Below the pieces are notes generated by a model that was not told the DNA's origin, searched no databases, and worked only from the letters and a program-made list of their open reading frames with translations. From Carpediemonas membranifera BICM (lineage: Eukaryota > Protista > Fornicata): a stretch of DNA of 64,000 nucleotides. Each line of letters starts with the position of its first letter. Position 1 is the first letter of the stretch. Shown piece after piece: positions 1,478-37,921 of the stretch. Where the stretch lies: contig JAHDYR010000037.1 of assembly GCA_019828565.1 (NCBI GenBank), positions 62,001 to 126,000 of the forward strand, read 5' to 3'. The translations under genes and the position numbers were made by a program.

Positions 1478-1536
1478 CATGCTGTTTTTTCTGGTACTTT
1501 AACCGGGACTTTAAGTCCCGGAATAAGTCCCGGAAT
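1478..1536 (+). repeat. Left TIR of element C
   Basis: CATGCTGTTTTTTCTGGTACTTTAACCGGGACTTTAAGTCCCGGAATAAGTCCCGGAAT; its reverse complement is at 63459-63518 with a few mismatches and 1 indel. Confidence 0.92.
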
Positions 1537-1644
1537 ACATGAAAAAAGGACGATTGCAAGAAAAAATGAACGCGCTCAAACAATTAAACTACAGCGTATT
1601 ACGCCTTGCACTTGCACAAGGCATCGTTTAGACATCCGTACAAC

Positions 1645-2417
1645 ATGCTGAAGACCTTCACTCGCGAAGTCAGTGGCATCGCACAAACTCTCGTCGAAAA
1701 ACTGTCTCATGGTTCATCTAGGGTCGGGATAGACTGCCGTGCCTCCCCCACTGGTCCAGTATGCCGAGATAAAATTTCCTGGGTGCGTAAAGATGCGATT
1801 TTTGGGAATTGCTCCGAAAGAAGTTTGCTTTTGCTCGCCAACAAAGAAGGCCGAAAGCAAGTGAGAACATCTGTGTCACATAACAACCTTTGTTCTGCAT
1901 CAAATAGCAGCAAGATTGCATACGGCATCGAGTATTCTCGAGAAAACACTCAAAACTTTGCCTGGCAAACGAAAAACGATCCTAAAAGCTAATTTACCTC
2001 CAATGTCTCCAAAAGTGAGCCGCATGATGTATATTTCTATGATCTTTGTCTTTCACCTTCAGTTCTTCTTCAAATCATCCATACGCGGCATATCAAGCAT
2101 TCCTCGTCGTTTGGTCAATTCTGGCAAATCAACAAAAGGTATCCATCGGCTCAGAAGAGGCTGTGGTGGTAGCCTCGGTCCCGCTTACACCCCCGTGCGT
2201 GCCTTGTGATGAAGAAAACTTGTGATATGGCCGGAATGCACTTTATGACAAACGAATGAAGCGGGCCGAGTTTATCGCCGAAATCAAGCAAATGCGCGTT
2301 AAGCTGAGTCACTTGACTGAAATGGATGACTATTACGCCATTGCCGACGACGTTACTAAGAATTACCTGACAGTTGCCTCAAATTTCTTACTGAAAGCTG
2401 TTCTTCGCTCGCAATAG
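1645..2417 (+). pseudogene. Possible fragmented or spliced gene of unknown function
   Basis: Consecutive short + ORFs, a GTGAGC...TTCAG intron-like stretch near 2015-2062, and an end convergent with the transposase stop. No recognisable domain. Confidence 0.3.
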
Positions 2418-2495
2418 ACGTAATTGACTGTAGATTGGTGAAGATAGTGTAAACATAAAGAACCCTTTATATACATACTCCGATTATCCATCTAT

Positions 2496-4041
2496 CTATC
2501 TTCTCGGGCGAAGATTGTGCCCAGTCCTCCTCATCAGCTCCTCCGCTCGCTGCTCACTGTTGCACAGATTGCAGATGCAGAGAGTCTCATCCAGACCACT
2601 GTCCGCCGTCCTTACACAAATCGTCTTGGCTGTCTCGTCAACAGTGATGAGTTCCCGGATCTCCTCCGGCTCCTCACAGATACCCTTGACCCATCCACTA
2701 AACAGCGCATTCAGCGACTGTTGGCTCGCCTCCCTATCCCAGTTGGGTACCTTAGTTAATAGACGATTTCTCCAGGCGGCACACCGGTCGGCATCAAATA
2801 GACACGAGCAGAATGTGACAGACTTACACTGCCTTGCAATCGGCAACACCATACCATGCTTTCTCGATGAGCCACGGCGGGTGTAGTGAGCAAGGACACG
2901 ACCGACCATTGTCTTCTGAGCCAGGAAGCCGAGAACCCAAGATCGATGCTTGTCCACTCGCAACTGGGCATTGATGAGGAAATCACGTTCGAAGTACTCC
3001 TCAAGCAAATAGAACATCGGAAGCCGCAGTTTCGAGTGAACCTTGGGCAGAACTGACACCACTGCATTCAGATATAGCGAGCCGGTAAACTTGGGAGAGT
3101 AAGTCAGTCTGAGACCATCATTGAGCGTCGTAGCAACCGAGGAGCGACTCGATGGAAGGTCATAGAACAACGTCAAGACATGGAACATAATGAACGTAGA
3201 AAAGGACGCCGCGTGATGGAAATCGATTGTCTGGTGTCACGTGGTCAGAGGAGTAATACAACGCCTGTAACTTGGCTGTAAGGAGTATGAAGGGCTGGAG
3301 TGACTGGTCAAACTCCTCAAGGTGCTCGTTGACTAGTGTCGCGAGCTTTCGTCTGTTCCAGCTCTGCTCGTTGCAGCCAGTTGTCCGCGTGAACAGCTTT
3401 TCAATCTGCTCAAGTGTGTGCACGTTCTGACCAGCGTGTTGAACCTTGACAAGGCCAAGCAGCGTCCAGAAGTCCTTCATAAGATAGTGACTCACATGCA
3501 TGACAGGTGGAATGAACGTGACATCAGCGTACTTTGTGAGCACGTGAAGTGGGCCATCTATCTCGTTGGCATAGGTCAGACAGCAGACATTTCGGTGACC
3601 ATCGCGGGACCCAAACCGTGTCATGTCTTTCACGCCACCAGCGTCACGAAGACGGATGCTATCTGCGATTGTCCAGCGATCGCAACGATTGGCAAACGGG
3701 TCGCTTGCGACCTTTCCCATGTGTAGGGAGGAGAATGGAGAGCGGTAGTATCGTCCCCGCTTGACGCCACTAACAATCTGCAACGCTTTGTGATCGCCGC
3801 AGATCCCGAGCAGGCTGATGACAACACGGCTGCGTGGGAGCAACGAACTGTCACCACATGCGAAGGGGATACCAATGAGCTTGTTCATTAGCCGCTGTAC
3901 ATCATCAAAGAACGAAGGAATGAGCTTCTCTGTGCCCTGAAATGTAAGAAGCGTCATGGGTGGGGTAATCTTCTGTGGTAGGGCTGCTCCCTCGCGATCA
4001 ATTATGCGATATTTGACCGCCGTACAGTCGGCCCGATATCC
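2496..4041 (-). CDS. Transposase of element C, 3' part (RAG1/Transib-like DDE), interrupted by A1
   Basis: Motifs CGDHKAL, PPVMHVSH, GCNEQS, LQALYYSS and FYLLEEYFERDF are shared with the A and B transposases; one frameshift near 3220. Confidence 0.8.
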
Positions 4042-4091
4042 CATACTGTAAGAATGGCTAGAGTCTCCCGGGAGATACTCTGGAGATACTC
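4042..4091 (+). repeat. TIR of A1
   Basis: CATACTGTAAGAATGGCTAGAGTCTCCCGGGAGATACTCTGGAGATACTC. Confidence 0.97.
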
Positions 4092-4377
4092 ATGTGTCAA
4101 CGCTGGTCAAACCTCGCGATCCAGGCGATCTCAGGCACCTCCAGAACATCTAGAAGGTAGTTATAGAAGCATAAAAGACATGTCTGGCGTCTTGAAGTAT
4201 CACATGGTGTCAGTGTTGATAAAAGAGGATAACGCATTTTATGTTGTAAATGTGAAGTGCTCGTTCGAACATGGGATCTTAACAGCGGTGTTTTATAGCT
4301 AATAGCAATGCCCTCTGAAGTTTTCAGCCTCCAGTATCTTCTACTTCCGTATGAATTAATGATTGAATCAAGAGATT

Positions 4378-4484
4378 GAGAAAATGAAGACTTCCCCACA
4401 AAAACCAAACATGGGGGGATAATCCATGGGGGTCAAGTACTATCCGTACATACTCAGGTTCTGTGGGGAAGTCTTCATTTTCTC
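4378..4484. repeat. 23-bp perfect inverted repeat (hairpin)
   Basis: GAGAAAATGAAGACTTCCCCACA (4378-4400) pairs with 4462-4484. Confidence 0.9.
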
Positions 4485-5001
4485 GCATTCGAAAAATCTG
4501 CAAAATTTTATCAACGATGAGATGGTCTTGGAAGATTGTGCTAACAACAGAGGTGTAACTAGATCAACAAAGGATCATGGAACCCTTGGTTTGTCCTAAC
4601 GCCCGAAACAGTGCCCAAAGAGCTCGTGACACAGGTGAACGCCAGAAAGAAATGAAGTTGCTCAGAGTGTACACCATATTGTCCTAGTTCCAATACTTTT
4701 TACCATTTTCTTCCAGCTGCTTTCGTTGGCGAGTTTCATTTTTTTCTTACCGTTACTTCCGCAGTATCTTGCAAGATTCAGGGGGAAATTCAAATTCACT
4801 TTTCCTTTGAGGGCAAAGCAGAATTGCGCAATAACGCATCAATGGGTATGAGAAGCATAGAATACGTATAAAACTCAGTGTAGTTGCTGCTCACAACTTT
4901 TTGGAGGAAACAGAGCAGCGGAAGCCCCAAACCAAAAATCTTTCACAAACTCTTGTGAAACTTGTGAAATGTGAAAGTGACTTCAGCAAAAATTCCTGAG
5001 C

Positions 5002-7555
5002 ATGCACATTGTCATACAGACCTTCATTGGCACTGTCTACGACAATACTGGCCCTCCAAGGACTGCAGAGCGTATGAACTACATTCTCGCTCATACATAC
5101 CTCTCCCTTGTTGGTATTGGCGGAAATACACAGGATCGAGGGCCGCCAGCGCCGAGAATTCCGTGAACTCATCTTGGAAATGGCTAACCAGGGCCTATTT
5201 GCGGACATGGAGGTCGATCCGAGATTTTTCGCCGACCCGCACGACTCTCGACCCTTCTTGCGTGCAGTACGTTCCCATAGAGGAGTCGCCCCGACCTTCG
5301 ATGTCTTCGTACGTGACCACGCGCGTATTGCTGTCACCCACGAACGCTTGCGGAGACAGCACGAGGTCTCAACTGAGGAAACTGACAACTACAAGCAGAT
5401 TTTTGGAGCTTGTTTCTATCCTGATGTACATCAAGTCGGGTTGTAACGCAACCCATGAGCTCTTTAAGCTCATCCGTAGTCTTTCTGCGCGACTTCATAT
5501 GCCAATCATCTCCAGCAAGGCTGCTGATATCTTCGTGAAGCAGTTGCAGGTCAATATCACCAAGATCAACGGCCTGGTTGCAGCGCTGACTAGACCAGAG
5601 GTTGCTTTCTTGGGTCATCTCGTCCCTGTGGAGTCTGTCACAGTCAACACGACCTGGCGGTGGGGCAGAAATGGCACAAAGTCGAGACTCGAGTGCACCA
5701 ATCGCCTAACGGTGGACGAGGGTGTCGATATCCAGCCCCTGACGGACGCGGAGAACGTCATTGACTTCAAGTGGGAGAAGCCAATGCTTGATCTTCACTA
5801 CGAGACGAGCGATGAGGCCACAAGTCATCGCCCTGAGCTCAAGCAGACCCAGGGAGTCACCCTCGGCAAGCGGCTCAACAGCTCCACATGGGACAAGGTT
5901 GATCGAGTCTGGTTTGATGCCGTTCGTTACCTCAAGCAAGCTGTTCGCCACCCGGAATGGCTCGAGTCGGACCAGCCCAACTACGTTCGATGCAAGAACG
6001 CCCTTGGCAACAGGGTTGGAGTCACGTTTAGCCCCATGAAGATCCTACTATGGCTTGACGGGTGGAAAGGGGGTTCTGCTGCCTTCAAGCTCCGCATCTA
6101 CGACCCCACAGGCTTCACATTCCCCAACAAGATTACTCCACCTTTCCGTATAGTCGAGTATATGGGTAGCGAGGGTGATTTGTTGATGGAAGAGTCTCTT
6201 TCTCGCGTCGAGAAGGAGATTGAGCGCCTATACACGAGTCAGATACCCATCAGAGACACTGGTGAGGTCACAATCTTCGACCATGTCATCGTCATGGGCG
6301 ATCATGCCGCCCTCCGCCACATGCTGTCCAGAAAGTCGGGCCGGCCCAACTATCCACACCCTTGCAACACGATTTACCACAAAAGTAAGGCGCTCCACCC
6401 GATAGCAGGCCGCCATCGTCTCACCATCAAGGACAACCTGGACGATAAGACAGCATACCAGGCTGAAGTCGACGACCCGAACCGAGTTCAAGATGTACTT
6501 GCAATCTATGGCGATTTCACCAATGAACGCATGGTGTTCGAGAATTGTAGTGTCATCCCTCTTGAGAAGATCGTCATATGCCCTCCATTCATGCACGACT
6601 CGCACCGTTTACTCGAGCAGGTTGCCCATATCTGTGGTTCTTTCAAGAAGCATCCCACCACCCGCGGGTCCCGCGAGGAGATCATCCAGAATAAGCTCCT
6701 CAACCTCAAGCTTGGCCGTATGTCGTCCATGCGAAGCATCGATAGGACCGTAGGTTGTAACGAGCAGTCGTCCGCACGTGTAAGGATGGCTGCCACGACC
6801 TTAAGAGGACTACGTTGCTCTCCCTGAGTGCATTCAAGATATCATTCGGCTCATTGGCTACCTCCAGGCCATGTACTACTCGTCCGAACCTGTGACTGAC
6901 GCGGCTGTCGCGTTTCACTTCATGGCTGCCGCAGTGGCCCACCTCATTCACGTCACGATTGCGTTCATTCCTAACAAGGATAAGACTTCCATATCCCTGC
7001 TATCAAGCAGCGAAGCGAAGACGAAGGAGAAACCGTGCGCTGAGAACCTCTACAGCATCAGCAGACTCACGACGCAGCCCCTGTGCCACAAGCATCTCAA
7101 GGTGCCGCTGTTCTATATCCTAGAGGAGTACTTTGAGCGAGAGTTCATCAAGAACCAGGAGGTAGCAGCCAAGTTGCACAGGAAGGCAGTCCTTGAGGGC
7201 ATTTGCTTGATCGAGCAGACAACTCTCGCGTGTTCCTTCCTGACGGGCATGCGTTCTTTTTGGTCGGCAGGACTACTCTGTCCCCCAGCTCCAGCGACTC
7301 AAGTGTGTGCGAGTTCACGACTGCTGTAAGGATGCGAAGCATTGGTTTGGTGTCCGCACACTGACCACCGTGACCTTCGAGCCAACTCGTGAGATGATCC
7401 AGACCTTTCAGGAGACTGTTGATGAAGTGTGGGAGTTTGTAGAAGAGCATACGACGCTGACGTGGGGTGAGGAGGGCACGATGTCATGCAGTCTGGCGGA
7501 CCATGGCATAGAGTTAGTTTGCTGCCTGTGTGGAGAGTGTAGCAGACAGAATTGA
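5002..7555 (+). CDS. Transposase of A1 (~850 aa after repairing frameshifts), RAG1/Transib/Chapaev-like DDE
   Basis: LLWLDG (D1), VMGDHAAL (D2), CPPFMHDSH, GCNEQSSAR, PLFYILEEYFERE (E), Cys-rich C-terminus. Pieces 5108-5446, 4971-6827, 6871-7329 and 7307-7555 are colinear with the B paralog. Confidence 0.78.
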
Positions 7556-7681
7556 GGCATCCGCGTGATATAAAGTGATGTAAGATGGTTCCGTGATAAA
7601 TTCATTCATTTTTCATATGTGCCACTTTTTTTCATGAATGGCACATTTCACATTTCGCAGGTTTCACAAAAGTTTGTGAAA

Positions 7682-8639
7682 ATGAACCAAACGGGGAAAG
7701 AATCTTGGACAGAGGATACTCTTGCAGCCCATAAGGCTTATATACAGTACGTAAGACTTTCTGATAAGTCAGACATCATCCCCAGTGTCCGTACGTTTTT
7801 TTAAGCAGGACGTTGCCACGAGAGGAGTTGATGACATCGATCATCGCTTCTTCATGTTTGTTCACCCAGTGTTGCCCAGGTATTTACCCAGATTGGTTGC
7901 GATTCGTGACTGCAAGACTGATTCCATCATTTCGGCCTTGTTGCTCACGAAGGAGTCATACAACACCGAAGCTACTGATGAAACCCCTTCCGAGCTGCGC
8001 CAGGACTTATATGTTGTGGTTATTCGCACGGCATTCTATGCCAGGGGCAATGGTCTCGCCACGATTCTTCTTTCGGTTGCCTCTGCCGGACAGAGGATCC
8101 GCCTACAGTGTGTAAGTTCTCTTGTGCCAGCCTACCAGCGTATGGGGATGTCCATCTCCAAGCAAAAGTCCACGATGGAGTACCTGGATGATGCGAAACT
8201 GGTGACCATGGAGGCAACATACGGCCCGAACAAGTGGACGAAGCTCGGTGAGAGTCTCGTTGCTTGCCATGGATATGCCATGAAGTCCTGGAGGGCTCCC
8301 CCGTCCGTCGACTACGGTACGGCTTTCACTTCTGTGGACCAGGTCCAGCCTCCCCAAAGAGAACCCAAGCAACCCAACCCACCCTGCCCACCAAGCCCTC
8401 GGACAAGCTCAACCGCTACATTAAGCGTCTGAGGAAGAGTGTTACCCCGCACCCGACGCGCAAGAAGCAACGTGAGATAATCATCGCCCTTTACGACAGC
8501 AACCGAAGGGATTTGGTCCAAAAAGATCGTGGATAAGAGATCAAAGATGCGTAAGGATTACCAGAAAGAGAACTATTTCGAGGAAGAGTGGTACCATCTG
8601 CTGTCTGAGAAGGAAGATGAGGAAGAGAATGAAGATTAA
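7682..8639 (+). CDS. GNAT-family acetyltransferase (intron 7856-7891; frameshifts)
   Basis: Acetyl-CoA motif A IRTAFYARGNGLATILL, motif B LVPAYQRMG, and a basic/acidic C-terminal tail. Confidence 0.8.
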
Positions 8640-8659
8640 ATGAAGAAGCAGTCGATTTA

Positions 8660-9346
8660 TTACTCATTTGAGTTGACGTTAGCTGCGTGGAAGAGCAGGA
8701 GGCTCGCGTAAACGGGTATACGCAGAACATCACGAGCCTCTGCAGCGGCACGGGCAGCGTTCCTCTTCTCAATCACAGCGGCGAGGTCCTTGAAGGTCTT
8801 CGAGTGCTTCTTGAGGACAAGCTGCGGACGCTCGAAGATGAGCTTAGAGTCCTTGCGGCACACACTCTCCAGAAGGACCTCTCTGACCTTGTCGACAGAG
8901 ATACCAAGCCTCTGGGCGACGAAGGCGTAAGCGCGGGGGCGGACCGACTGAGGGATGCCGTGGAACAGCTCGCGGTACTCACGGACAGTTGCCAAGAGAG
9001 GGCTGCCATGGTCGACCTCATCTCCTTCGGCGTCCAGGCTGATGAGGGCCCTGAAGCGCTTCTCCTTGGCCTCAGAAGACTCGCCCTTGTACTGCGCCAT
9101 GATCTGCTCAATGCTATCGAGAGAACGGAACTCCGCTTCATCCCTAAGATCCTCCGGAACGAATGTGGGGAGGTCATTGGGGCGTCTGTCAACCACCTCA
9201 TTGCAAATGCGGTTTCCGGTGGCGACATCGGCAGCGGAGATGCTTCCAGCAGCGTGCTCCTTCTCTAAGTAAGTAGAAATCATTTCCACAGCGTTTAGAC
9301 GCTTTCTGCCCTTGCTCTTAGCAGTATTACTCCGTTTCGGAGGCAT
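8660..9346 (-). CDS. Conserved unknown 228-aa helical protein with basic N-terminus
   Basis: Homolog at 48025-48786 (RFRALISLDA/RFKALLSLDA; KRNAARAAAEARDVLR/KRNAERAEAESRDVLR); copy at 39997-40683. Confidence 0.85.
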   Translation of the reverse strand: MPPKRSNTAKSKGRKRLNAVEMISTYLEKEHAAGSISAADVATGNRICNEVVDRRPNDLPTFVPEDLRDEAEFRSLDSIEQIMAQYKGESSEAKEKRFRALISLDAEGDEVDHGSPLLATVREYRELFHGIPQSVRPRAYAFVAQRLGISVDKVREVLLESVCRKDSKLIFERPQLVLKKHSKTFKDLAAVIEKRNAARAAAEARDVLRIPVYASLLLFHAANVNSNE

Positions 9347-9876
9347 AACGTTTCTTCAAGGTGCACTTTATGCTCGCAACGAAATTAGAAAACCAAACGA
9401 AGAAAGGAGAAGAGTATCGATCCTCAAACGCTGGCAAGCATGTTTATATCACTAAAAACAACATCATGAGAGCTCTGTGGCCTCGAATGGCCTGTAATAG
9501 AACCTAAACAACATCAACAATTGTAACTCGTCGAGGAAGCGTTGAGATGAACTATAAACGCGGGAATGGATCAAACAATGGATTTAAGAGTGGCATACAA
9601 GGCCAGAATACCGCAATTATCGTCCGTTGATCCACGTGACCTCCATCTTGGTCGGTATCCAGAGAAAGCCCTTCAGACGCTCGCAACACAACATTTAGAA
9701 GACTTATCGTGAATGGCTCCTTCCATGATGGACCTTCACCTGGACATGCCATCTCTGACATGTCCAATGGTCTCCATTGAGCTCGCATTCATCCCTCTGA
9801 GCATCCGCCCCATGGTCCAATCAGATGCCCAATCAAAATTCTGCACCGAAGTGCCCCGAGGACCTCCTCTGAGTTC

Positions 9877-10044
9877 ATAAGGCTCTCAGAGCCTTATACA
9901 CCAATTCGAAATCGTGTATAAGGCTCTCAGAGCCTAATGAATCTCCCGCGCGCCGTTGCCTACTGATACTGGTCATTTTTCCGCATGGTTTATTAGGCTC
10001 TCAGAGCCTTATGAATTTTTTTCATTAGGTCCTGAGAGCCTTAT
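9877..10044. promoter_or_regulatory. Four copies of a 21-bp palindrome upstream of the OTU gene
   Basis: ATAAGGCTCTCAGAGCCTTAT and variants at ~9877, 9918, 9992 and 10024; the last ends 4 bp before ATG 10049. Confidence 0.7.
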
Positions 10045-10048
10045 AATC

Positions 10049-11423
10049 ATGCAATCGGTTTTCGACTTCTACATGCTCTTGAAGCGTTCGAAAACGTTTG
10101 GTAAGCAGTTCTTTATCTTCTATGACAGCGCTGAGATCAGTCAGGCCTCATCAAACGCGCAGGAGATGATCAAGTGCTCACTTCTTCGTAAGTTCCTTCT
10201 GCCCGATGACAAGATCCTCACCGCCCTTCTTCGTGATCGTAAGTACTTTCCCCATACCTTTTTACACAGATATTGGCTGGAAAACGCTTCGCAAGCTCTT
10301 CAGGTCGCCTCACCTTATCCTGCACCTAAGAGAAACTGCCGAGGCTCAGCTTGAGCTGATCACGACATCGGCTGAGCTGAAGAAGGTCATGGGAGATCAT
10401 GCCTACGACAGCCTTGTCCAGAAGGTCCGCCGAGAAGTGTCTTCGGATCACGAGCACGACGTTGTAGGTAAGTACTCCAAATAACTCCTGCTTATTCAGT
10501 CCTTTCGCTGCTCCGTGAGCGCATAATGCGCAAGGTGAAGCCAGGAAGGTCGGGGGGTCGTCCGTTCGTTCAAGAACAACGCCGAGCCTGAGCTGTCGGA
10601 CCCGGTCGACGTGCAGTTCGACCGGATAAGGCACCTGGACGCGCTTCTGATGGACTCTCCCGTCCACAGAAGTACCCTGAGTGGCACATCGCGCCTCCTG
10701 CGCCGCCATCTTGCCGTGGAACACAACGGTGCGATCCGTGATTTGAAGAGGGAGCTTTGGCGAGCCCGGGCCAAGATTGAAAAGCTCGAGACGGAGAAGC
10801 TTGTGCCCTTGAAGAAGGAGGCTGAGGTCATAGACCTGGATCGGGAGGCTTTGGTGGCCGCAGACCCCAAAGATGACGTCCAGACCATCATGGAGAAGAC
10901 CGCTAAGAAGTTTAAGAACGATACAAGCTCTCTGAAGCGGTCTGAGGTGCCTGGGGATGGCTCATGCATTCTCAGCGCCATGCATCTCATCAGGACTGGG
11001 TCCCAGCCTACTGTTGGTGAGAAGCTTCAGCTGTACGAGGACATCCGATCCTTCTGTGAGGGCAAGGGGTTCGAGGGCGACCCGTTCTCTGAGATGCCTG
11101 GCTCCCCTTTCCCCTGGGCAGACCATGAGGCCATCCAGGCCAGTGTAGAGCTGAGTCACACTCCGGTAATCATCACCCAGATCGACGAGGACCTTACCTG
11201 CCTCTGGGTCCACAAAGGTTGGGAAGATTCAGAGTTCTTGCCCATCCAGGATGCGACGCTGGACAAGATCTTAGGTCTTTGTGAGAGCATGAAGCTCACT
11301 CAGTTCATCGTCATCGAGAATCGTCATGCCTGTGTCTACAGTCTTCCGGACCGCAAGCGCAAGGCAGCTGCCGCAGAGCCCGAGAAGCGTGCTACTCGTC
11401 CGGAGGATGTCACCCGCTCATAA
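10049..11423 (+). CDS. Coiled-coil protein with C-terminal OTU-like cysteine protease (introns 10239-10269, 10468-10499)
   Basis: VPGDGSCILSAM (Cys), WADHEAIQA, NRHACVY (His). GTAAGT..AG introns join the upstream ORFs. Confidence 0.8.
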
Positions 11424-11453
11424 ATGATTGATTGAATTGATATCTCTTCAAGT

Positions 11454-12456
11454 TTATTCACTCTTGCCTTGAGTCATGCGCGCAGTGTGGAAGCGCTTAC
11501 GGGCGGGGTTGGACTTGGTCTTCCGCTTGCGGGGCTGCGGCTTGACCTGCAGTATTTTGAACTGCTCCACCTTTCGAGCGAGGTAGTGAGGGTCATCTAT
11601 GGCGAGACTCTTGAAGCGAGCAATCGGGTGCTCCTCTTCATCGGCCTCAAAGTAGGTCTCGCCATAATCGATGCGCAAGAACTCGCCGCGAACGATGTTG
11701 GCAGTGGCCCTGACCGATATCACTGGCAGGCCATCCACCAAGACGTCCACGAACTCACAGTTGACATCGTCAGGGCTGTGGTTAATCAGGTGGACACCCG
11801 CTGCGGCCGACATGGCATCGACGGCGACCTGACTGTCAGCGAATGACATGCTGTGTAATGGTAATGGAATATGCGAAACAAACACCATCTGGCCGTTGTT
11901 GCTGGCCGTCTCAGCATCGGGAATCAGCTTCCCGAAGTATATGCCGAGACATGTGCCAGCTGAGATATCCTCAGTGGCAATCATGCCTCGGCCGACGCTC
12001 TGCGTCCGATTGAGGGCCGGATGGTCGGGCTCCTGGGTCAGACGGGGGTCGCAACGGGTCTCGGATGAGATCCAGGCCGGAGCAGGAATGGCCTGAAGGC
12101 TTATCTCATCCGAAATCAGCCGCTTGACGTCCTGCAGGTCTGAACCCGGGTAAACATGCGTCCACCTAGGGTGGACGTGCATGACGGACCCCTCGACGGA
12201 GTCCTCCTCGGCTTCAGACGAGCTGGATGAATGGGAAGGCGACTCGGGAGGCGGAGGAGGAGGAGAATCTTGCTCCTTACCATCCTCGGGCGACTCGGGA
12301 GGCGGAGGAGGAGGTGATGCTGCCGTTACAGTCGTTTCCGCAGGACGTTGATCCTGCGGAGAAGCAGATGACTCAAAAGTCTTGTTGGGTGGATTTTGAG
12401 TCCTTCTCTTACCTACCGGTTGCTGCTTCCCTTGCGGGCATCTTTCTTCTCGCCAT
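11454..12456 (-). CDS. SET-domain lysine methyltransferase (intron 11851-11883)
   Basis: GRGMIATEDISAGTCLGIYFG, LINHSPDDVNCEF, IVRGEFLRIDYG; Pro/Ser-rich N-terminus starting MARRK. Confidence 0.9.
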
Positions 12457-12578
12457 ATCTTCGTTCTCTTTTTTTCTCGCAACTCCCGATCCGAAGAACA
12501 GGCGCATCGCTGATCAGATCCGAACAATACTGCAGTAGCATGCATAAATAGTGTAGCAATGAAGGTATACCTCTTTAC

Positions 12579-13652
12579 TTGGATCAAAAGCTTGTCCTTT
12601 GCTTCAAATCAAAATGTGCCATTCATGAAAAAAATGGCACATTGCAAATGGACGAGAAATACGGAGAATTCGGCACGCGACGCATCAGTAAGGACCAAGA
12701 AGTCTTTGAATGTGTCTGTGGTAAGGTTCAGCTCAGGCGTGGACATCGCGGGATCGGTTTCAAGTCTTCTTCCTCTCACGAGTGTCCTTTTACAACAGAG
12801 AAGTTGATTAACCGACGGGTGCTAATCACCATCGAGCCGCTGCATGGTTTCGAGACCCCGACTCAGCCCTACCCCGTCTTCCGCGTGGAAAGTCTTGCCA
12901 ACTCATCTGGCTATCATTTCAAGCTCAAGACGGCTCTAGAGCTCGTTGATGATGAGTGGCTGACTGCCGTTGCCCGCACCTTTAAGTCTACGTCCCATCT
13001 GGCCGAGGTACTTGAGGAGTTGGCGTCGCAGTACTCTAACTTCGACACTTACTGGGTGATATCGGGTCATTCTGATACAGAAACGTCGCGTATGATCATT
13101 GATACGTCTACGAACGAGTTTCTGTATCACCATGATCTGGTCCAGCTCATCCTCAGGTCATTCGAGAGCCCTTCCTTGGTGAGATCGACGCGTGTGCGTC
13201 AGATTTACTTTGCCACCTGCTCCGGACTCGACAGATCTGAGGAGTCTCAGCTGTGCAGTGCTATTTCGACAGCCAAGTACAAGAACACATGCATTATCCT
13301 CACTCCTGAGAAGGTTCTGGCGCATGAGCTTGTTCTCCAGGACGCCTATTGGCTCTACCGCGTGACATGCCTCGACAATCCTCTTTTCTTTCTGACGAAG
13401 TACTTCTCTGGCTATCGTTTCGCGCCTGGCTCAGCAGGAAGACGGATTATAGCCAATGGTTCCTTGTCATTTCCCAACGAGGCCAGGGTCATCATGTCTG
13501 AGACTAGCTATGCCCGGCCCATTCCTCTTCCTGAAATGCAAGACATCGTTTCTGATGTCAACGAGTATGACCCGTTAAGAACCGACCAGAGAAGACTTAT
13601 GAATGATCGATACATAAGCATGATGACCCGTGCGCTTGAGAGAGACGTGTAG
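12579..13652 (+). CDS. Putative clan CD (caspase/metacaspase-like) cysteine protease with N-terminal Cys motif
   Basis: WVISGHS...IYFATCSG His/Cys after hydrophobic strands, conserved in the B paralog (WVVSGHS...IYFATCTG). Real start probably MDEKYG. Confidence 0.6.
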   Translation: MDQKLVLCFKSKCAIHEKNGTLQMDEKYGEFGTRRISKDQEVFECVCGKVQLRRGHRGIGFKSSSSHECPFTTEKLINRRVLITIEPLHGFETPTQPYPVFRVESLANSSGYHFKLKTALELVDDEWLTAVARTFKSTSHLAEVLEELASQYSNFDTYWVISGHSDTETSRMIIDTSTNEFLYHHDLVQLILRSFESPSLVRSTRVRQIYFATCSGLDRSEESQLCSAISTAKYKNTCIILTPEKVLAHELVLQDAYWLYRVTCLDNPLFFLTKYFSGYRFAPGSAGRRIIANGSLSFPNEARVIMSETSYARPIPLPEMQDIVSDVNEYDPLRTDQRRLMNDRYISMMTRALERDV

Positions 13653-13695
13653 TAAACAGATATATATACAATTTATGATCATCTCTCACTAAACA

Positions 13696-14920
13696 CTAAA
13701 CAATCGGTCTCATGCCCTCTACTCGCTTATAGACAACCTTACATTTGCTGCAGAGGGGAACGATGTACAACTTGCCATCAATGGTGTACTGCACTTCCTC
13801 AGAGCAATGCTCACAGTACCACCAGTGACAGCCTCGGCAGCAAAGAAGAGTAGAAGCCTGTTCTTCTGCTTTCTTCGTGTTCTTGGATCTTAGGCCCTTT
13901 TTGCACGCCTGGCACTTGTTGCTAGAGCCGGTAATATAGCACGCGGGACAGTAGTCCTTCTTGCCCTTCGTCCTGACACATTGCTCGTGCAGGAAACCTT
14001 TGCAAGCACAGCATCTCCTGAACGTAGTGCCGTCTGGATTGAAGAACCACTCGGGGGTACCACACACAAGACATCCAAACAGCATTTTGCGCTGATGAAG
14101 GCTAAGGAAAGTCGTCTTACATGTCTCGGGTTCGGTAGGCGGGTCTCTCACACGGGTCTCTGAGACAACGTCGTTGATCAGGACCTTAATACGGTCAACA
14201 ACAGCATCGGACACGTTGTTAGACACCTGCTGCAGATCGTCGTCACCAAGCCTGGGTCGCTTGGCTTCCTCGTCGTCAAAGACGATCTTCTTCCGAACCG
14301 GCACCGATCGATCTGTCGTTGACTGAGGTGTGTCTGCTTCATCACCAACACCAAGTGAAGACAGTTGCGTAGTCGACCGTATCGGTGGGATCTCTGCCTT
14401 GATCATCGTAGTCGGGGTCGATTTGACCGTTGCCTTTTTGCTTGACAGGCTTATATCTCACCCGGTTGATCACAGGCAAGTTCTCAAGGCTGATTGAGTC
14501 GGAAACATCGTTCAGTCCAGCATCTGAGAGAACTTCTGAGAGCATCTGGCGGAACTCGGCATGGCAGGGCTGACTACGGACAGCAATGTGCTGCATGACA
14601 GAGCCATTGTACTCCGCAGAGGGTCTAACTGCTGTTATAAACGTAGTAACGCCGACAACAGTCGTCCGCCTGACCTGTTCCCGGAGTTCAATTGACTTGA
14701 ACCCAGGGCATTCGGCGGCGACCCTGCGCTGGACCTCCAGAAGTACCTTATGGATGTCGCGTGCACTCAAGCCGAGGTCAGTTGCCTCGTCGTCCTCAAA
14801 TACTGAAGAAACAACGGCTGTAACAAATGAACGACGGAGATTTGCGAGCTTACTGTTGCCATACTGTCTGATGGGGGGCGTAGCAGCAATAGGTTCTGGT
14901 ACAGACACTTCTGAATTCAT
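13696..14920 (-). CDS. PHD-finger protein with a second Cys-rich finger (frameshift near 14430)
   Basis: CLVC..CCAC....H..C..CPAC (C4HC3), then CQAC..CRGC..CEHC..CSKC. ORFs 14342-14920 plus 13696-14406 correspond to the single B ORF 30534-31754. Confidence 0.85.
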
Positions 14921-15006
14921 GAGAATTTCTATCCAAGCTGTTTACGTTGTTACATTTGTCTATTTACGTAGACTCCTGGCATTGACAATACCTAAAACTG
15001 CGACAT

Positions 15007-15231
15007 TTGTCGATCATGATTCGAGCAACTAGCCACCAAAAGGTAGAAACGGTAACGTCAGGGCTCGTGGAAGTTGCCAAAGTACAAGATTCTTACAAAA
15101 TAATCCGAAAAACTGCTCAGGGCTTGCGAAAGGAAGAAGAAATCAACAAAAGGGTGAATGACACAGAGTTTCTGCTGCAAGAGATACGCGATTTGTTTAT
15201 AGATGCCATACAGACGATGAGGGACAAGTAA
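15007..15231 (+). CDS. Small conserved ~70-aa helical protein
   Basis: Homolog at the syntenic position in B, 30284-30511 (EVAKVQDS/EVGKIQDS; NDTEFLLQEIRDLFID/NDTQHVLEEIGDMFID). Confidence 0.75.
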   Translation: MSIMIRATSHQKVETVTSGLVEVAKVQDSYKIIRKTAQGLRKEEEINKRVNDTEFLLQEIRDLFIDAIQTMRDK

Positions 15232-15333
15232 AAATGACATTCACTAGCTTTGCTTCTCATTTCACATATTCTTGTGAAATATGTGAAATGTGAAACAGAT
15301 TCTAGTGAATCTCATTTTTTCTTGCACTTTTTG

Positions 15334-15383
15334 GAGTATCTCCAGGGTATCTCCCGGGAGACTCTAGCCATTCTTACAGTATG
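15334..15383 (-). repeat. TIR of A1
   Basis: Reverse complement of 4042-4091 with 1 mismatch. Confidence 0.97.
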
Positions 15384-16402
15384 CCATCAAACCATAGGAG
15401 CATCTCAAGACCATAAGCCTCCTGTCGGCTCTCCGGGTTAATAGTGACGGATTGAACGAACTTGCTTGACTTGATATCGCGCTGAACTCGGTCGGGGAAC
15501 TTCAGCATGAACTTAATCTGGGCGACAGGGTCATAGGACAGAGCGCTGATCACCATCCGGTGAGATTTCTTTGTTCCACGCGGAATGATGCCCATGTTCC
15601 GGCATAATCTCTGAATCTCCGGCAGCTTGGATGGATCATCATGCGAAATGTATAGCCGTGACTCCCCCGATATCTTCTCGAAGTGGTGAGCGAAGAGGCA
15701 GTCGTGTTCATCGAGAGTCTCTTGCAGGTCGGTGTGGGTGGTTGGGTCATATAGGACGTAAAAAGCCTCCGCGACTTCCACGCTACGCGTGAAACCGGCT
15801 CCTGCTTGACATTGAAGCTCTTGGTTAGACACCCCATCACGCCCAGAGACATCGGGCTGCTCAGGAGTGAACGCGTTGACGTCCTCGATCAGTGTTGGGT
15901 CTGATATAACAGATCGTATGGCTGGGATGGACAGCAGGTCATACCCAAGATTCTGGAGACTGTCTACCACCGGTGGAGTGTGAATTCCAAGGCGAACTCC
16001 CATGTCGGAGGCCATTGAAACAAATGCATGGCGGAGTCGGTCGTAGCGATTCTTCCCTAACTCGACGGCACAGATAATTGCCATGGCCGTGTATAGGCTC
16101 TTCGTCTTCGCCTCGTTGTCGACTCGCGTAACAGTCACATGAGCAGTGCTGTGATTCCTCATCAATGCGCTCCAATCAGCATTAACGACTGCACTACGTA
16201 ACGTAGCATCACTATGTGTCACCCTCAGTGGACATGACGTCAGGAAATCTCGGAGAATGCGCAAGCACTGCTCCTTGCTGTCTAAACGAAACGATTTGTC
16301 GCGGTTTCGGAGCAGAAACTCGTCTAAGACAGCGGTGATGATAGATCCAAGAGAACTGTCCGCCCCATAGGTGATGACGACTTCCCAGTTCTCGAAACGC
16401 AT
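15384..16402 (-). CDS. Transposase of element C, 5' part
   Basis: Ends LEMLLWFDG. Joined to 4039 it reads LLWFDGYRADCTAVKYRI, which aligns without gaps to A's LLWLDGWKGGSAAFKLRI. Confidence 0.82.
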
Positions 16403-30001: not shown

Positions 30002-30283
30002 TACTTTCTGTCATACTGTTAGAATGGCCAGTTAATCCGGGGATATACGGAGGATAAACACCCTTTTGCACAAGAAACTGCAAGAAAAAATGAGATTCAC
30101 CCGTATCTTTTTCACTATTTCACACGTTTCACCAACGTTTGTGAAACGTAGAGAAACGTGCGGAAGGTACGGGTAAGTCTCATTTTTGCTTGCATACGAC
30201 GTGCTAGGGGCATTCTTGTGATTCGTAGGTAGGTGCTGATGTTGCATAACCATTCATTGCTTATTCAAAGTGATAATAACGTG

Positions 30284-30511
30284 CTAGTGGTCTTTAAGTT
30301 GCTGTATTACATCTATAAACATATCTCCTATCTCTTCCAGAACGTGTTGTGTGTCATTCAGCCTCTCATTCACCAACCCCTCGCAATTCAGCCCAGTGAT
30401 GTGATTTCGTATTTCTCGAACAGAATCTTGTATCTTGCCGACTTCATGGAGGCAACTGGTCATATGATTAAGCCTTTCGTTCGTGGATAACCGGAACATT
30501 GTCGTCAACAC
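30284..30511 (-). CDS. Small conserved ~70-aa protein (B)
   Basis: Homolog of 15007-15231. Confidence 0.75.
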   Translation of the reverse strand: MLTTMFRLSTNERLNHMTSCLHEVGKIQDSVREIRNHITGLNCEGLVNERLNDTQHVLEEIGDMFIDVIQQLKDH

Positions 30512-30533
30512 CTGCGCAGTTTAAGATGAGAAT

Positions 30534-31754
30534 ATGACGACCAGTGAAACTGCGAAGAAAGCTGAGATTTCGCAGGGCACGTCTTGCGGATCGGATAAGA
30601 GAACAGAGTACCGCCGGCTGTTCGTGACTAGCTTCCTGGAATGCTTTTTCGACGTCGCGGACATCCCAACTATCGGTCTGACGACCTCTGACGTTCATCG
30701 CGCTCTCCTTGGCATGCAGGATGTGATATCGGGCCTCTGCAACGGCTTTCGCAAGATTGCTATTGCAAACTCCGTCAGGCGCACGACTACTGAGCCCATT
30801 CAGGCATTTGTGGCAAGTAGAAAGGGTGGCACAGAGCTCATTGGCACAAAGATACCCTACCTGGTTGTCAGAGACAGAGCAAATGCAGCTGAACACTTGC
30901 AGGAGTTTAGAAACAGGATGTCTGTGCTGTTTCGGGGACTTGGACTCCACGATGTCTCCAGTCTGATCACTTGCACCGGCATTCAATGGCCTCCAGCCGT
31001 TGTAATCAGGATCAAGCATCGCAAGCTCCAGCCTGAGCCACGTACCCCAGCAGAAACACCCGCAGAGACACCCACAAAGACTCCAGTGACAACATTGGTA
31101 CCAAAGCTCAGAAAAAGAGCTGACTTGGCTACCATCAAGCCTGATTCCCCCGTCAAGAAGCTTAATTTTGATGCGCAGATGCATGAGCCTGCTCAGAAGC
31201 GATCGAGGCTCGAAGAGGCTGACTTGAAGGAGGTTGCCGCGATGGTGACGGCTTCACTCTCCACAACTGTCACTGATCTCCTCAAGCAGTCACCCAAGGC
31301 CGTTGAAATGAACGATAAGGTCCCCGACCTCAAGCAAGCGACGTTTCTGAAGCTATATCAGCGTAAGTTACTGTTCGCATGCGCTGTTTGTGCCTCACCT
31401 GAATGGTACTTCAACCCAAACATGAAAAGAAACGAGTATGAAACATGCTATCTCTGCCATCAGTTCATGCATCTTCAGTGTGTCAGAGAGAAGAGGATTG
31501 ATGGTAAGAACAGAAAGGTTTGCGCAGCTTGCAGTCTGGCAGGAAGGTCTAACAGATGTCACGCGTGTATCAAGGACGGAGACAAGTCGACAAAGGACAC
31601 TGGCGTCTGCCGGGCGTGCCTAAACTGGTTCTGCGAAGAGAAACACTTCAGCTATGCTGAGTTCCATCTCGACGGCCAGGACTATCGTGTCAGGTTCTGC
31701 GACCAGTGTATGACTGTCTACCAGAAGGTGGCGGATATGAAGCCAATTGAGTAA
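30534..31754 (+). CDS. PHD-finger protein (B)
   Basis: CAVC..CYLC...H..C..CAAC plus a second finger; intact 406-aa ORF. Confidence 0.88.
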   Translation: MTTSETAKKAEISQGTSCGSDKRTEYRRLFVTSFLECFFDVADIPTIGLTTSDVHRALLGMQDVISGLCNGFRKIAIANSVRRTTTEPIQAFVASRKGGTELIGTKIPYLVVRDRANAAEHLQEFRNRMSVLFRGLGLHDVSSLITCTGIQWPPAVVIRIKHRKLQPEPRTPAETPAETPTKTPVTTLVPKLRKRADLATIKPDSPVKKLNFDAQMHEPAQKRSRLEEADLKEVAAMVTASLSTTVTDLLKQSPKAVEMNDKVPDLKQATFLKLYQRKLLFACAVCASPEWYFNPNMKRNEYETCYLCHQFMHLQCVREKRIDGKNRKVCAACSLAGRSNRCHACIKDGDKSTKDTGVCRACLNWFCEEKHFSYAEFHLDGQDYRVRFCDQCMTVYQKVADMKPIE

Positions 31755-31777
31755 GTTAAATAGGGAGATTTTGAACT

Positions 31778-32875
31778 TTAAGTGTCTTCCAGTGCCGCTC
31801 TGTGCGCAACTGTCATCTCAGTAATGTAGCGCGCGGCCATAACATCCGCCGGAGATCTCTGCAGTGGTCTATATGCAAGTACCTCAGAAACAAGGTCGAC
31901 CATCTCGGGAAGAGGGATTGGCGTGCGGAACTGAGTGGCTGTGAGGATCTCAATCGCGCCCGGGGTTATGGACATTGATCCATTCGCGATAACCCGTCTC
32001 CCTGCTGTGCCAGGTGCGAGCCCATAGCCGGAGAAGTAACGCGAGACGAAGTGGAGCGGGTTGTCCATGCATGTAGTGCGGTAGAGCCAAAAGCAGTCCT
32101 GCAGGACGAGTTCGTTGGCAAGCATTTTCTCCGGAGTGAGAATGATGCACGTATGCTCGTATGCCTGGGTCGAAATGGACTGCTTAAGCAGAGAGAACTC
32201 GCTATTGTCCGCTCCGGTACAGGTGGCGAAGTAGATGAGCCGAACCCGGCTGGTGGTGACGAGGGATGGCTCACGGAAAGCGAAGAGGATCATCTGTACG
32301 ATATCGTGAAGGTACAGGAACTCGTTAGCGCTCGCATTAACGATCATTCTCGACGTTGTGGTCTCGCTGTGGCCAGAAACAACCCAGAATGTCTCGAAAT
32401 TGGCGAATTCTGCAGCCAACTGTTGCAGTATGGAGCCGAGGTGGGTCGTCGAGACGAAACTGACGGCAACCGTGGTGAGCCATTCGTCGCTGACGAGATC
32501 GAGGATGGCCTTCATGCGCTTGTGGTACCCCTCGGAGCCAGCAAGCCCGGTGACAGTGAAGACCGGGTTCGCACAAGTAGGTGCTTCGAAGCCATGGACT
32601 GGCTCGAGCAGGATAACGATGCGGCGGTTCACAAGCTTGCTCAGGGTGAAGGGGCAGTCATGTGTGTACCTGATTCCGTCATATTCCTTCAGGCCCTGGT
32701 TGCGAAGGTCAGAACGCGGCCTAGTGATTCCACAGACGCATTCATACGTGAGAGGATGGTCGCTGATGCGTCTGGTACCGAATTTGCCAAATTTCCTCTC
32801 CATTTGGCAACTACCACTTTTTTTCCAACACTGGTAGTTGGCCGAACCAGCTATAGGGAAGGATATGGACCACAA
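31778..32875 (-). CDS. Putative clan CD cysteine protease (B)
   Basis: WVVSGHS..IYFATCTG; clearly homologous to 12579-13652. Confidence 0.6.
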   Translation of the reverse strand: MWSISFPIAGSANYQCWKKSGSCQMERKFGKFGTRRISDHPLTYECVCGITRPRSDLRNQGLKEYDGIRYTHDCPFTLSKLVNRRIVILLEPVHGFEAPTCANPVFTVTGLAGSEGYHKRMKAILDLVSDEWLTTVAVSFVSTTHLGSILQQLAAEFANFETFWVVSGHSETTTSRMIVNASANEFLYLHDIVQMILFAFREPSLVTTSRVRLIYFATCTGADNSEFSLLKQSISTQAYEHTCIILTPEKMLANELVLQDCFWLYRTTCMDNPLHFVSRYFSGYGLAPGTAGRRVIANGSMSITPGAIEILTATQFRTPIPLPEMVDLVSEVLAYRPLQRSPADVMAARYITEMTVAHRAALEDT

Positions 32876-32988
32876 TAAGCAAGCATTCTGGTGTTACAGA
32901 TAAGATATTGTATGTGTGTCCTTTACGGTGTGAGACGGCCCCATCAATCCCGAGAAATACCGCGTGTCCGTTTGCAAAAAAAAATCAG

Positions 32989-33798
32989 ATGGCGAGAAGA
33001 AAGGCGCTCCCACCAAAGCCGCAGCCTGGGGGTATCAGAATACCCATTACGTCCACTGCGGGCAAGACGCCGCCGTCTGCGCCTTCAAATGATTCTCAGG
33101 AGGATTCCTCAAGCGAAGATTCCATCATTGAATCCGTTGTGCATACTCAGGCACTGCATCCGGATCTGGTCGCCGCGATCTACCCAAACACTCCCGAGGA
33201 GTCGATCAGGGGAGCTTAAGGAGGCCGAGAAGGACCTTACTCCCCTCGAACCCCCGAGTTGGTTATCCACCCGGCTGACCCACCCCTCCATTGCCGTTGA
33301 GGTGCAGCCTTGTCTGGCTCCCGACCACACGGACGTGGGTAGAGGCCTCATTGCAACTGCCGCAATTGAGCCCGGAAAGCTCCTCGGCATTTACGCCGGT
33401 AGGATTGTGTCCGACGAGGACTACCACGCGAATAACAGCAACATGGTGTTTGTTCATTGTTCATTATGCCTTTACACAGCATTTCATTCGACGCTAGCAA
33501 CCTTCACGTCGACGCAGGCGAAGGTGAAGGCATTGGTGTACACCTCATCAACCACAGTGAGAGTGACACCAACTGCCAGTTCACCAACCGTTTGCTCAAG
33601 GACCTTCCAGTCCTTGCGGTTGAGTCGACGAACGTCATTCAGGCCGAAGAGTTTCTTCGTATCAGTTACGGCGAGATCTTCTTTGATGCGGGTGAGGTCT
33701 TAACCATTGCTAGGTTCCCGAGTCTGCCCATTTCTCATCCGAACTATCTCACAAGGTTCCTGGAGCAGTATCCGGCACTCAAGAAGCGGAAGAAATGA
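32989..33798 (+). CDS. SET-domain methyltransferase (B), intron 33448-33479
   Basis: MARRK start, GRGLIAT..GIYAG, LINHSE..NCQF, EEFLRISYG. Removing the 32-nt intron restores the frame. Confidence 0.88.
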
Positions 33799-33823
33799 AT
33801 TAAAATGTCAAAACATCTCTTTT

Positions 33824-33954
33824 TTACTCGGGAACTCCACGCTTAACGTCCTCGGCATCAACAACTCTCTTTTCGCGATCCTTATCGACTGCCTTGCGCT
33901 TGATATAAGTCGTATGAGCCTTTCTCTTACCACCCTTTGAACGTTTGCGGACAA
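33824..33954 (-). CDS. Displaced C-terminus of B's OTU gene
   Basis: Removing A2 and one AA gives ..HATLFVRKRSKGGKRK..GVPE-stop in frame. Confidence 0.8.
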
Positions 33955-34106
33955 CATACTGTAAGAATGGCTAGAGTCTCCCGGGAGATACCCTGGAGAT
34001 ACTCCAAAAAGTGCAAGAAAAAATGAGATTCACTAGAATCTGTTTCACATTTCACATATTTCACAAGAATATGTGAAATGAGAAGCAAAGCTAGTGAATG
34101 TCATTT

Positions 34107-34331
34107 TTACTTGTCCCTCATCGTCTGTATGGCATCTATAAACAAATCACGTATCTCTTGCAGCAGAAACTCTGTGTCATTCACCCTTTTGTTGATTTCT
34201 TCTTCCTTTCGCAAGCCCTGAGCAGTTTTTCGGATTATTTTGTAAGAATCTTGTACTTTGGCAACTTCCACGAGCCCTGACGTTACCGTTTCTACCTTTT
34301 GGTGGCTAGTTGCTCGAATCATGATCGACAA
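34107..34331 (-). CDS. Small conserved protein (A2)
   Basis: Identical to 15007-15231. Confidence 0.75.
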   Translation of the reverse strand: MSIMIRATSHQKVETVTSGLVEVAKVQDSYKIIRKTAQGLRKEEEINKRVNDTEFLLQEIRDLFIDAIQTMRDK

Positions 34332-34417
34332 ATGTCGCAGTTTTAGGTATTGTCAATGCCAGGAGTCTACGTAAATAGACAAATGTAACAACGTAAACAG
34401 CTTGGATAGAAATTCTC

Positions 34418-35642
34418 ATGAATTCAGAAGTGTCTGTACCAGAACCTATTGCTGCTACGCCCCCCATCAGACAGTATGGCAACAGTAAGCTCGCAAATCT
34501 CCGTCGTTCATTTGTTACAGCCGTTGTTTCTTCAGTATTTGAGGACGACGAGGCAACTGACCTCGGCTTGAGTGCACGCGACATCCATAAGGTACTTCTG
34601 GAGGTCCAGCGCAGGGTCGCCGCCGAATGCCCTGGGTTCAAGTCAATTGAACTCCGGGAACAGGTCAGGCGGACGACTGTTGTCGGCGTTACTACGTTTA
34701 TAACAGCAGTTAGACCCTCTGCGGAGTACAATGGCTCTGTCATGCAGCACATTGCTGTCCGTAGTCAGCCCTGCCATGCCGAGTTCCGCCAGATGCTCTC
34801 AGAAGTTCTCTCAGATGCTGGACTGAACGATGTTTCCGACTCAATCAGCCTTGAGAACTTGCCTGTGATCAACCGGGTGAGATATAAGCCTGTCAAGCAA
34901 AAGGCAACGGTCAAATCGACCCCCGACTACGATGATCAAGGCAGAGATCCCACCGATACGGTCGACTACGCAACTGTCTTCACTTGGTGTTGGTGATGAA
35001 GCAGACACACCTCAGTCAACGACAGATCGATCGGTGCCGGTTCGGAAGAAGATCGTCTTTGACGACGAGGAAGCCAAGCGACCCAGGCTTGGTGACGACG
35101 ATCTGCAGCAGGTGTCTAACAACGTGTCCGATGCTGTTGTTGACCGTATTAAGGTCCTGATCAACGACGTTGTCTCAGAGACCCGTGTGAGAGACCCGCC
35201 TACCGAACCCGAGACATGTAAGACGACTTTCCTTAGCCTTCATCAGCGCAAAATGCTGTTTGGATGTCTTGTGTGTGGTACCCCCGAGTGGTTCTTCAAT
35301 CCAGACGGCACTACGTTCAGGAGATGCTGTGCTTGCAAAGGTTTCCTGCACGAGCAATGTGTCAGGACGAAGGGCAAGAAGGACTACTGTCCCGCGTGCT
35401 ATATTACCGGCTCTAGCAACAAGTGCCAGGCGTGCAAAAAGGGCCTAAGATCCAAGAACACGAAGAAAGCAGAAGAACAGGCTTCTACTCTTCTTTGCTG
35501 CCGAGGCTGTCACTGGTGGTACTGTGAGCATTGCTCTGAGGAAGTGCAGTACACCATTGATGGCAAGTTGTACATCGTTCCCCTCTGCAGCAAATGTAAG
35601 GTTGTCTATAAGCGAGTAGAGGGCATGAGACCGATTGTTTAG
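34418..35642 (+). CDS. PHD-finger protein (A2)
   Basis: Copy of 13696-14920. Confidence 0.85.
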
Positions 35643-35685
35643 TGTTTAGTGAGAGATGATCATAAATTGTATATATATCTGTTTA

Positions 35686-37891: not shown

Positions 37892-37921
37892 ACTTGAAGA
37901 GATATCAATTCAATCAATCAT

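Follow-up and report, generated by a model that had tools for sequence, protein, structure and literature searches.

Which kind of enzyme is encoded, in three related versions, in a 64,000-nt stretch of the genome of Carpediemonas membranifera BICM (assembly GCA_019828565.1, contig JAHDYR010000037.1, contig positions 62001-126000; hereafter the window)? The host is a free-living metamonad with a genome of 24.2 Mb, and an earlier sequence-only reading had proposed a divergent DDE transposase in the neighborhood of RAG1, Transib and Chapaev. Our analysis points with high confidence to the DDE transposase of autonomous cut-and-paste DNA transposons that form a new and very divergent lineage of the CMCT clade, with three families (A, B and C) nested in the window. 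The CMCT clade comprises EnSpm/CACTA, Mirage, Chapaev, Transib/RAG1, Plavaka, ESTA and Lanisha (Kojima 2025, PMC12730594).

A six-frame motif scan recovered the six motifs on which the sequence-only reading was built, in the order given there, in A, B, C and in a second copy of A (A'). In A (plus strand, span 6045-7140) these are LLWLDG at 6045, GDHAA at 6297, PPFMHDSH at 6582, GCNEQS at 6753, YYS, and FYILEEYFER at 7111; those of A' (minus strand, 42205-43298) are identical. B carries LLWLDA (51354), GDHAA (51102), PPIMHNSH (50805), GCNEQS (50661) and FYLLEEFFER (50309) on the minus strand, spanning 51354-50280. On the same strand C shows LLWFDG (15400), GDHKA (3798), PPVMHVSH (3510), GCNEQS (3378) and FYLLEEYFER (3014), with a span of 15400 and then 3798-2985. 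The order of the motifs thus holds for C as well, but they are not contiguous, since element A splits the C gene into 16402..15386 and 4041..2496. The three versions had been described as paralogous. They are indeed related, yet they represent three transposon families with more than 100 genomic loci and not paralogous host genes.

Throughout the window, transposons sit nested one inside another. Element A copy 1 (4042..15383, plus strand) is a complete transposon of 11,342 bp that lies inside the transposase gene of element C. Its boundaries were determined against 40 other genomic loci, with matching that begins at 4040-4042 in eight copies and stops at 15383 in three. A second copy in opposite orientation (33955..45298, minus strand, transposase at about 41790-44232) is inserted in element B and constitutes the large, near-perfect 11-kb inverted repeat of the window. 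Element B itself (30012..53483, minus strand) amounts to about 12.1 kb without the A copy 2 that interrupts it. The left part of element C (1478..4041, minus strand) encodes the C-terminal two thirds of transposase C (4041..2496), while the N-terminal third (15386..16402, minus strand) was severed by the A insertion just after LLWFDG. At least 14 near-identical C copies are present in the genome and all of them begin at the position that corresponds to 1478.

The terminal inverted repeats (TIRs), together with the target-site duplications (TSDs), define these elements further. The A TIRs are 50 bp long, begin with CATACTGTAAGAATGG and differ by one mismatch between left (4042..4091, plus strand) and right (15334..15383, minus strand, located by TIR comparison), so that the element reads CATACTG..CAGTATG at its ends. 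In the left TIR the CATACTG tip is followed by a CCCGGG palindrome and two GGAGATAC half-sites. The B TIRs (48 bp, perfect) begin with CATACTGTTAG and have the same CATACTG tip, and C has CATGCTG at 1478; the three families share a CATRCTG tip with inner boxes that are family-specific. All three complete insertions in the window are flanked by a TSD of exactly 2 bp, none of which reaches 3 bp, namely CC for A copy 1 (4040..4041, with the second CC at 15384-15385), AA for A copy 2 (33953-33954 and 45299-45300) and GT for B. When 4042-15383 and one CC are deleted in an empty-site reconstruction, the open frame of the C transposase is restored (..LLWFDGYRADCTAVKYR..) and matches an uninterrupted relative (P0015).

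Some further features were seen at or near the element ends. An A-rich box, GCAAGAAAAAATGA, lies about 55-75 bp inside one end only (A right, 15310-15330; B left, 30070-30090; C left, 1545-1565), which makes each element asymmetric past its TIRs. In A and B this box is followed by TTTCAC repeats. In two metagenomic relatives the transposase gene is accompanied, as in CACTA-type elements, by arrays of short sub-terminal repeats in both orientations (L049, 504-811; L050, 3132-3291; ACCCTTGATGACCCTT, CCTTGACTGC), and the contigs end within these arrays. TIR pairs were not found on the short foreign contigs. To the left of element C, a retroelement pol gene with aspartyl protease and reverse transcriptase domains (Pfam; window 449-1651, plus strand) is truncated at 1478, exactly where C starts. 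At 63459-63518 there is a C-like right end (..CAGCATG) that matches the C left TIR at 1478 imperfectly; the flanks of the two share no dinucleotide, and this end is probably that of another C-type copy.

At least 28 A right ends were counted genome-wide on about 20 contigs, with full-length pairs 11.3 kb apart. The A copies differ by 0.13% substitutions and 0.2% gaps, which are mostly 1-bp indels. Identity to A is about 100, 57, 48 and 30-34% in the subfamilies that make up the more than 100 transposase loci, many of which have open frames of 820-906 aa. These copies indicate that A, B and C are recently amplified mobile elements, and with near-identical copies, nested insertions and intact frames of 824 and 860 aa the elements look recently active. 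The transposase genes in the window itself are broken. The reading frame of transposase A (5108..7555, plus strand) appears to shift in a T5 run (5403-5407) and is broken further by private 1-nt insertions at 6801 and 7257. The latter two are single bases that genomic copies with the intact 824-aa frame (L009, L010) do not have. Furthermore, a 219-nt contig from a 2018 microbial-mat metagenome matches window 6673-6892 with one substitution and lacks the extra base at 6801, which indicates that the element or its host occurs in a microbial-mat habitat. Compared with L029, an intact 860-aa copy from another part of the genome, transposase B (49860..52399, minus strand; 57% identical to A over the core) likewise carries one extra nucleotide at 52103 and another at 50312. 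At the T5 run the N-terminal frame (5108-5405) and the main frame part; the same is seen in every A copy examined, and the B frame is continuous there. A systematic long-read error, programmed frameshifting or a defect common to the whole A family could each explain this shift, and A may be non-autonomous.

An exhaustive HMMER search of 1.84 billion representative proteins returned 19 relatives only, none of them annotated. These are "hypothetical proteins" of C. membranifera, proteins of a short-contig eukaryotic assembly (GCA_002919055.1) and a few from metagenome contigs. Used as queries in a word-indexed search of 5.8 billion proteins, the A core and the family profile retrieved only C. 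membranifera proteins. When the most distant relative (P0019) was used as query in the word-indexed search, four more proteins from the same metagenome were found (P0030-33). Our literature search turned up nothing that connects Carpediemonas to Transib, EnSpm or RAG1.

The alignment of 19 family members (22-55% identity; residues numbered as in the B-type protein) has twelve invariant positions, W351, D353, K363, R365, D368, E391, D434, P532, P533, M535, H536 and R577, and E701, E702, E705 and R706 are nearly invariant. With the distant metagenomic subgroup included, near-invariance holds for all five of D353, D434, E701, E702 and E705. The alignment indicates a conservation of these motifs far beyond chance. 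The zinc-binding residues tell a different story in the two parts of the family. After the second Asp, the segments reported in the sequence-only reading were found again, namely YPHPC in A, YPQPF in B and YRSPF in C. The distant subgroup (P0019/P0030-33) has SQRCxxC 21 residues after the second Asp (..ADHKQL..SQRCSFC..) and LYWHxxxH (..LYWHSMLH..) about 20 residues before SEExFE (SEENFE). SxxCxxC is known from Transib and RAG1 (PMC1131882). In A, B and C, YPQPF or YPHPC stands at the SxxCxxC position and the second His of HxxxH is gone. Judging from these alignments, the CxxC/HxxxH zinc site is decayed in A, B and C and kept in the metagenomic sister subgroup.

Structure prediction linked the family to characterized enzymes. 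The AlphaFold model of an intact B-type protein of 846 aa, based on the 19-sequence alignment (predicted local distance difference test 79, predicted template-modelling (TM) score 0.74), shows the RNase-H-type strand order beta1-beta2-beta3-helix-beta4-helix, the fold on which the sequence-only reading depended. D353 is predicted to close beta1, D434 to follow beta4 immediately and LEExFER with E701/E702 to lie on a later helix. All 46 Foldseek matches at E<=0.001 were RAG1, BbRAGL or HzTransib, the best at 1e-8. The metagenomic member P0031, which is 14% identical to B, was modelled too and scored 14.6 with RAG1, 13.2 with Transib, 13.1 with RAGL, 11.1 with the P element, 7.3 with ISCth4, 5.7 with Hermes and 5.5 with retroviral integrase. 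RAG1, RAGL and Transib were the only strong PDB matches for the two models, and with RAG1 and Transib the alignment covers 400-450 residues and extends past the RNase H core on both sides. From the alignment ends (746~1008 and 606~1007), E701/702 and E559/560 fall no more than about 2 residues from RAG1 E962, and the motif-by-motif equation with RAG1 that was proposed earlier agrees with these offsets in the predicted models. To our knowledge, within the CMCT assemblage only RAG1, RAGL and Transib have solved structures. RAG1 is thus "closest" in the PDB because the CMC side lacks solved structures, and the ranking is biased. When the ESM Atlas was searched with its own P0031 model, Plavaka and Transposase_21 clusters reached TM scores by query of 0.73-0.75 and RAG1 fragments 0.67; this fold comparison covers P0031 and has predicted models on both sides. 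Language-model neighbors were RAG1 (0.94, 174 shared features, the best-named), Transposase_21 and Plavaka. On these models the family appears, as far as tested, no closer to RAG1/Transib than to Plavaka or EnSpm.

Hallmarks of CMCT elements are the SxxCxxC and HxxxH motifs, 5'-CA..TG-3' termini and a TSD of 2-5 bp (PMC12730594). The termini and the TSD length are those of the A, B and C family, and the motifs occur only in the sister subgroup. Together with the RNase-H-type order and the PDB matches to RAG1, RAGL and Transib, this upholds the proposal of a deep-branching relative of the RAG1/Transib/CMC group. We file the family as a new deep CMCT lineage and not specifically as a Transib, because a 5-bp TSD, a CAC heptamer and sequence similarity to Transib all failed to appear.

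Several observations weigh against this assignment. In Pfam the pieces matched no family at E<=1 and the 19 members no relevant one at E<=10, with a library that lacks the newer RAG1 sub-domain models. The family profile, run against all PDB sequences including RAG1 and HzTransib, gave only a chance flagellin match (E 5), and the hidden Markov models (HMMs) for Plavaka (PF18759) and Transposase_21 (PF02992) gave no match at E<=10 in the proteins or the six-frame genome. The zinc ligands that define the group are lacking in A, B and C, where, as in their closer kin, they are absent or reduced to single residues. The clustering of the acidic triad is read from topology and alignment offsets, and both models were built on a single shallow alignment (fewer than 20 sequences), which limits their independence. 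In addition, the apparent T5-run frameshift affects every A copy examined, and mobility is read from the sequence.

The alternatives mainly concern the position within the assemblage. With RAG1 and Transib as top PDB matches, RAG1 clusters as the best-named language-model neighbors, SxxCxxC in the sister subgroup and a co-encoded PHD-like gene, the family might be placed on the Transib/RAG1 side, closer to RAG1 than to CMC/Plavaka, as a protist outgroup of the RAG ancestor whose PHD-like protein is the RAG2 counterpart. Likeness to the Transib/RAG1 core (HzTransib 6PQX, mouse RAG1 4WWX and 6DBL, BbRAGL 6B40) appears, in the models, in the core fold with its DDE triad and in the multi-domain arrangement. 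However, sequence similarity to Transib/RAG1 was not detectable, the PDB ranking is biased as described, and among predicted models the Plavaka and EnSpm clusters fit at least as well. Transib TIRs have a CAC-initiated heptamer, with CAC conserved in all Transibs, and an A-rich nonamer (PMC1131882). The tip here is CATRCTG, with CAT in place of the invariant CAC and no evident heptamer-spacer-nonamer, and the TSD is 2 bp instead of 5. A, B and C have lost the zinc ligands, the model places an extra RRM-like domain (residues 214-304) before the core, and the elements are 11-12 kb long with 6-8 cargo genes, none of whose ORFs (open reading frames) encodes a RAG2-like kelch protein. We consider a place on the Transib/RAG1 side unlikely. 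There is an appreciable, though minor, chance that the family is a far-diverged Plavaka- or Mirage-type CMC element without separate rank. PlavakaB has TSDs of 2-3 bp and CATCA..TGATG termini, and fungal CMCT elements carry chromatin cargo such as TET/JBP (PMC12730594); large elements with chromatin-modifying cargo, CAT.. termini and a TM score by query of 0.73 to the Plavaka cluster are likenesses of our family to Plavaka. On the other hand, neither the Plavaka nor the Transposase_21 HMM recognizes it, 1.84 billion representatives held only 19 unannotated relatives, and the C(2)C and H(3-4)H zinc motifs kept by Plavaka are decayed in A, B and C. The cargo also differs, with SET, PHD-like and GNAT-like proteins here and TET/JBP there, as does the host, a metamonad here and a basidiomycete there. 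EnSpm/CACTA, Mirage and Chapaev resemble the family in a TSD of 2-4 bp, in large multi-gene elements and in the sub-terminal repeat arrays of the metagenomic relatives, and the predicted fold reaches a TM score by query of 0.74-0.75 to Transposase_21 clusters. In contrast, the Transposase_21 HMM has no match, the termini are not CACTA, and DUF4218 or Transpos_assoc modules are lacking.

Two more distant explanations lie outside this assemblage. The RAG1 likeness might be a generic effect of a large alpha-helical insertion in an otherwise unrelated RNase-H-fold transposase from the P-element/THAP9 or IS256/MULE side. We regard this as very improbable, since RAG1 and Transib align far beyond the core (400-450 residues) and score higher in both models, and since SxxCxxC and HxxxH in the sister subgroup are CMCT marks. 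The Drosophila P element transposase (6P5A, 6PE2) aligns over a shorter span of 290-345 residues, and its 8-bp TSD, its P-type insertion domain and its THAP plus GTP-binding architecture are not seen here. It is hardly credible, finally, that the copies are a host gene family or an assembly duplication and not a mobile element. Near-perfect 11-kb inverted repeats could resemble an assembly artefact, but each repeat is a complete element that has TIRs of its own and, in its own host, a 2-bp TSD unlike that of the other, and copies occur on about 20 contigs, on which grounds an artefact was rejected. Moreover, one insertion splits a transposase gene precisely and another splits the retrotransposon pol at 1478. 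Beyond the preferred reading of a new deep CMCT lineage, a bolder one would see an undescribed RAG1-fold branch of superfamily rank, confined to Carpediemonas-like anaerobic protists and free of the zinc site, that acts with its own chromatin module of a PHD-like reader and SET and GNAT-like writers, in functional parallel to RAG1 and the RAG2 PHD, and multiplies via recombinational repair of donor breaks in a host without Ku and DNA-PKcs end joining; we hold this combination to be quite unlikely.

If the family is a new CMCT lineage, its transposition might proceed as follows. As modelled, the enzyme of 820-860 aa has its RNase-H-like catalytic core, with D353, D434 and E701/E702, within a RAG1/Transib-type multi-domain arrangement. 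By analogy with known systems, a dimer would bind the 48-50-bp TIRs through the CATRCTG tip and the family-specific inner boxes and would cleave at the CA..TG ends with two metal ions, possibly via flank hairpins as in RAG, Transib and hAT. The 3'-OH ends of the transposon would next attack the target DNA at points staggered by 2 bp. Ku70/80 and DNA-PKcs are missing from metamonads, and the host has no canonical non-homologous end joining (NHEJ) (PMC8516963). For this reason donor breaks would need recombination or alternative end joining. Recombinational repair of the donor would copy the element back and could, speculatively, help to explain the copy number.

The cargo genes of A are conserved in B at 28-56% identity, and several of them recur beside the transposase on foreign contigs. 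A GNAT-like ORF (7785..8432, plus strand) is 40% identical to its B counterpart, and its relative on L046 has weak Pfam marks of a GNAT acetyltransferase. It is followed by an ORF without assigned function (8660..9346, minus strand; 37% in B). The SET-domain protein (11454..12587, minus strand; Pfam SET, E 4.9e-11) has homologues in B, L046 and L047, and a 357-aa ORF without assigned function (12579..13652, plus strand) is the best conserved cargo, with 56% identity in B and 27-29% in L044 and L046. A Cys-rich PHD-like protein (13696..14920, minus strand) is encoded by two overlapping ORFs, with homologues in L044 and L045; in B the PHD-like region is the C-terminus of a single 406-aa ORF (30534-31754). 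By eye the Cys-rich protein shows a C4HC3 spacing, and PHD_4 (E 0.013) and RH_dom (E 6.5e-4) matched it below the cut-offs. The co-encoded PHD protein of the sequence-only reading can therefore be retained as a conserved PHD-like protein with a weak PHD_4 match. RAG2 consists of a six-bladed kelch propeller and then a PHD finger. No cargo ORF gave a kelch or propeller match in Pfam, as had been noted from the sequence, and a parallel with RAG2 would be one of analogy. With its SET, PHD-like and GNAT-like proteins the cargo is of a chromatin type. An additional A ORF (10611-11423, plus strand) has a GDGSC..H pattern that recalls OTU-type cysteine proteases, with no Pfam match and no B counterpart by tblastn. 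Conversely, a B-specific ORF of more than 660 aa (45299-47296, minus strand), which belongs to no Pfam family, was severed by the insertion of A copy 2.

With this family the RAG1/Transib/CMC assemblage would be extended to a free-living metamonad, by a lineage so divergent that only structure prediction and a metagenomic intermediate expose the link. It suggests that a zinc site regarded as a hallmark of the group can be lost and that a 2-bp target stagger is compatible with a RAG1-like fold, and its enzyme is a new one to compare biochemically with RAG1 and Transib. The chromatin-type cargo is conserved, and the absence of canonical NHEJ in the host raises the questions of how excision breaks are repaired and how the elements target or shield themselves. 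For the C. membranifera proteome, more than 100 loci that are now "hypothetical protein" genes should be masked as transposons.

The remaining parts of the window contain a few other features. Identical 300-bp direct repeats (16773-17072 and 23066-23365) lie 6.3 kb apart, and an inverted second copy of the segment they enclose is found within 53584-62234. This segment may be an element of the long-terminal-repeat type or a part of C-type cargo, and it contains an ORF (20674-21624) with a weak PHD match (E 4.7e-4). A protein-kinase gene (28709-30001, plus strand) ends 10 bp before the left end of element B. Kinase and RCC1 genes also adjoin the family member on contig L044, and these may be either host genes or cargo.

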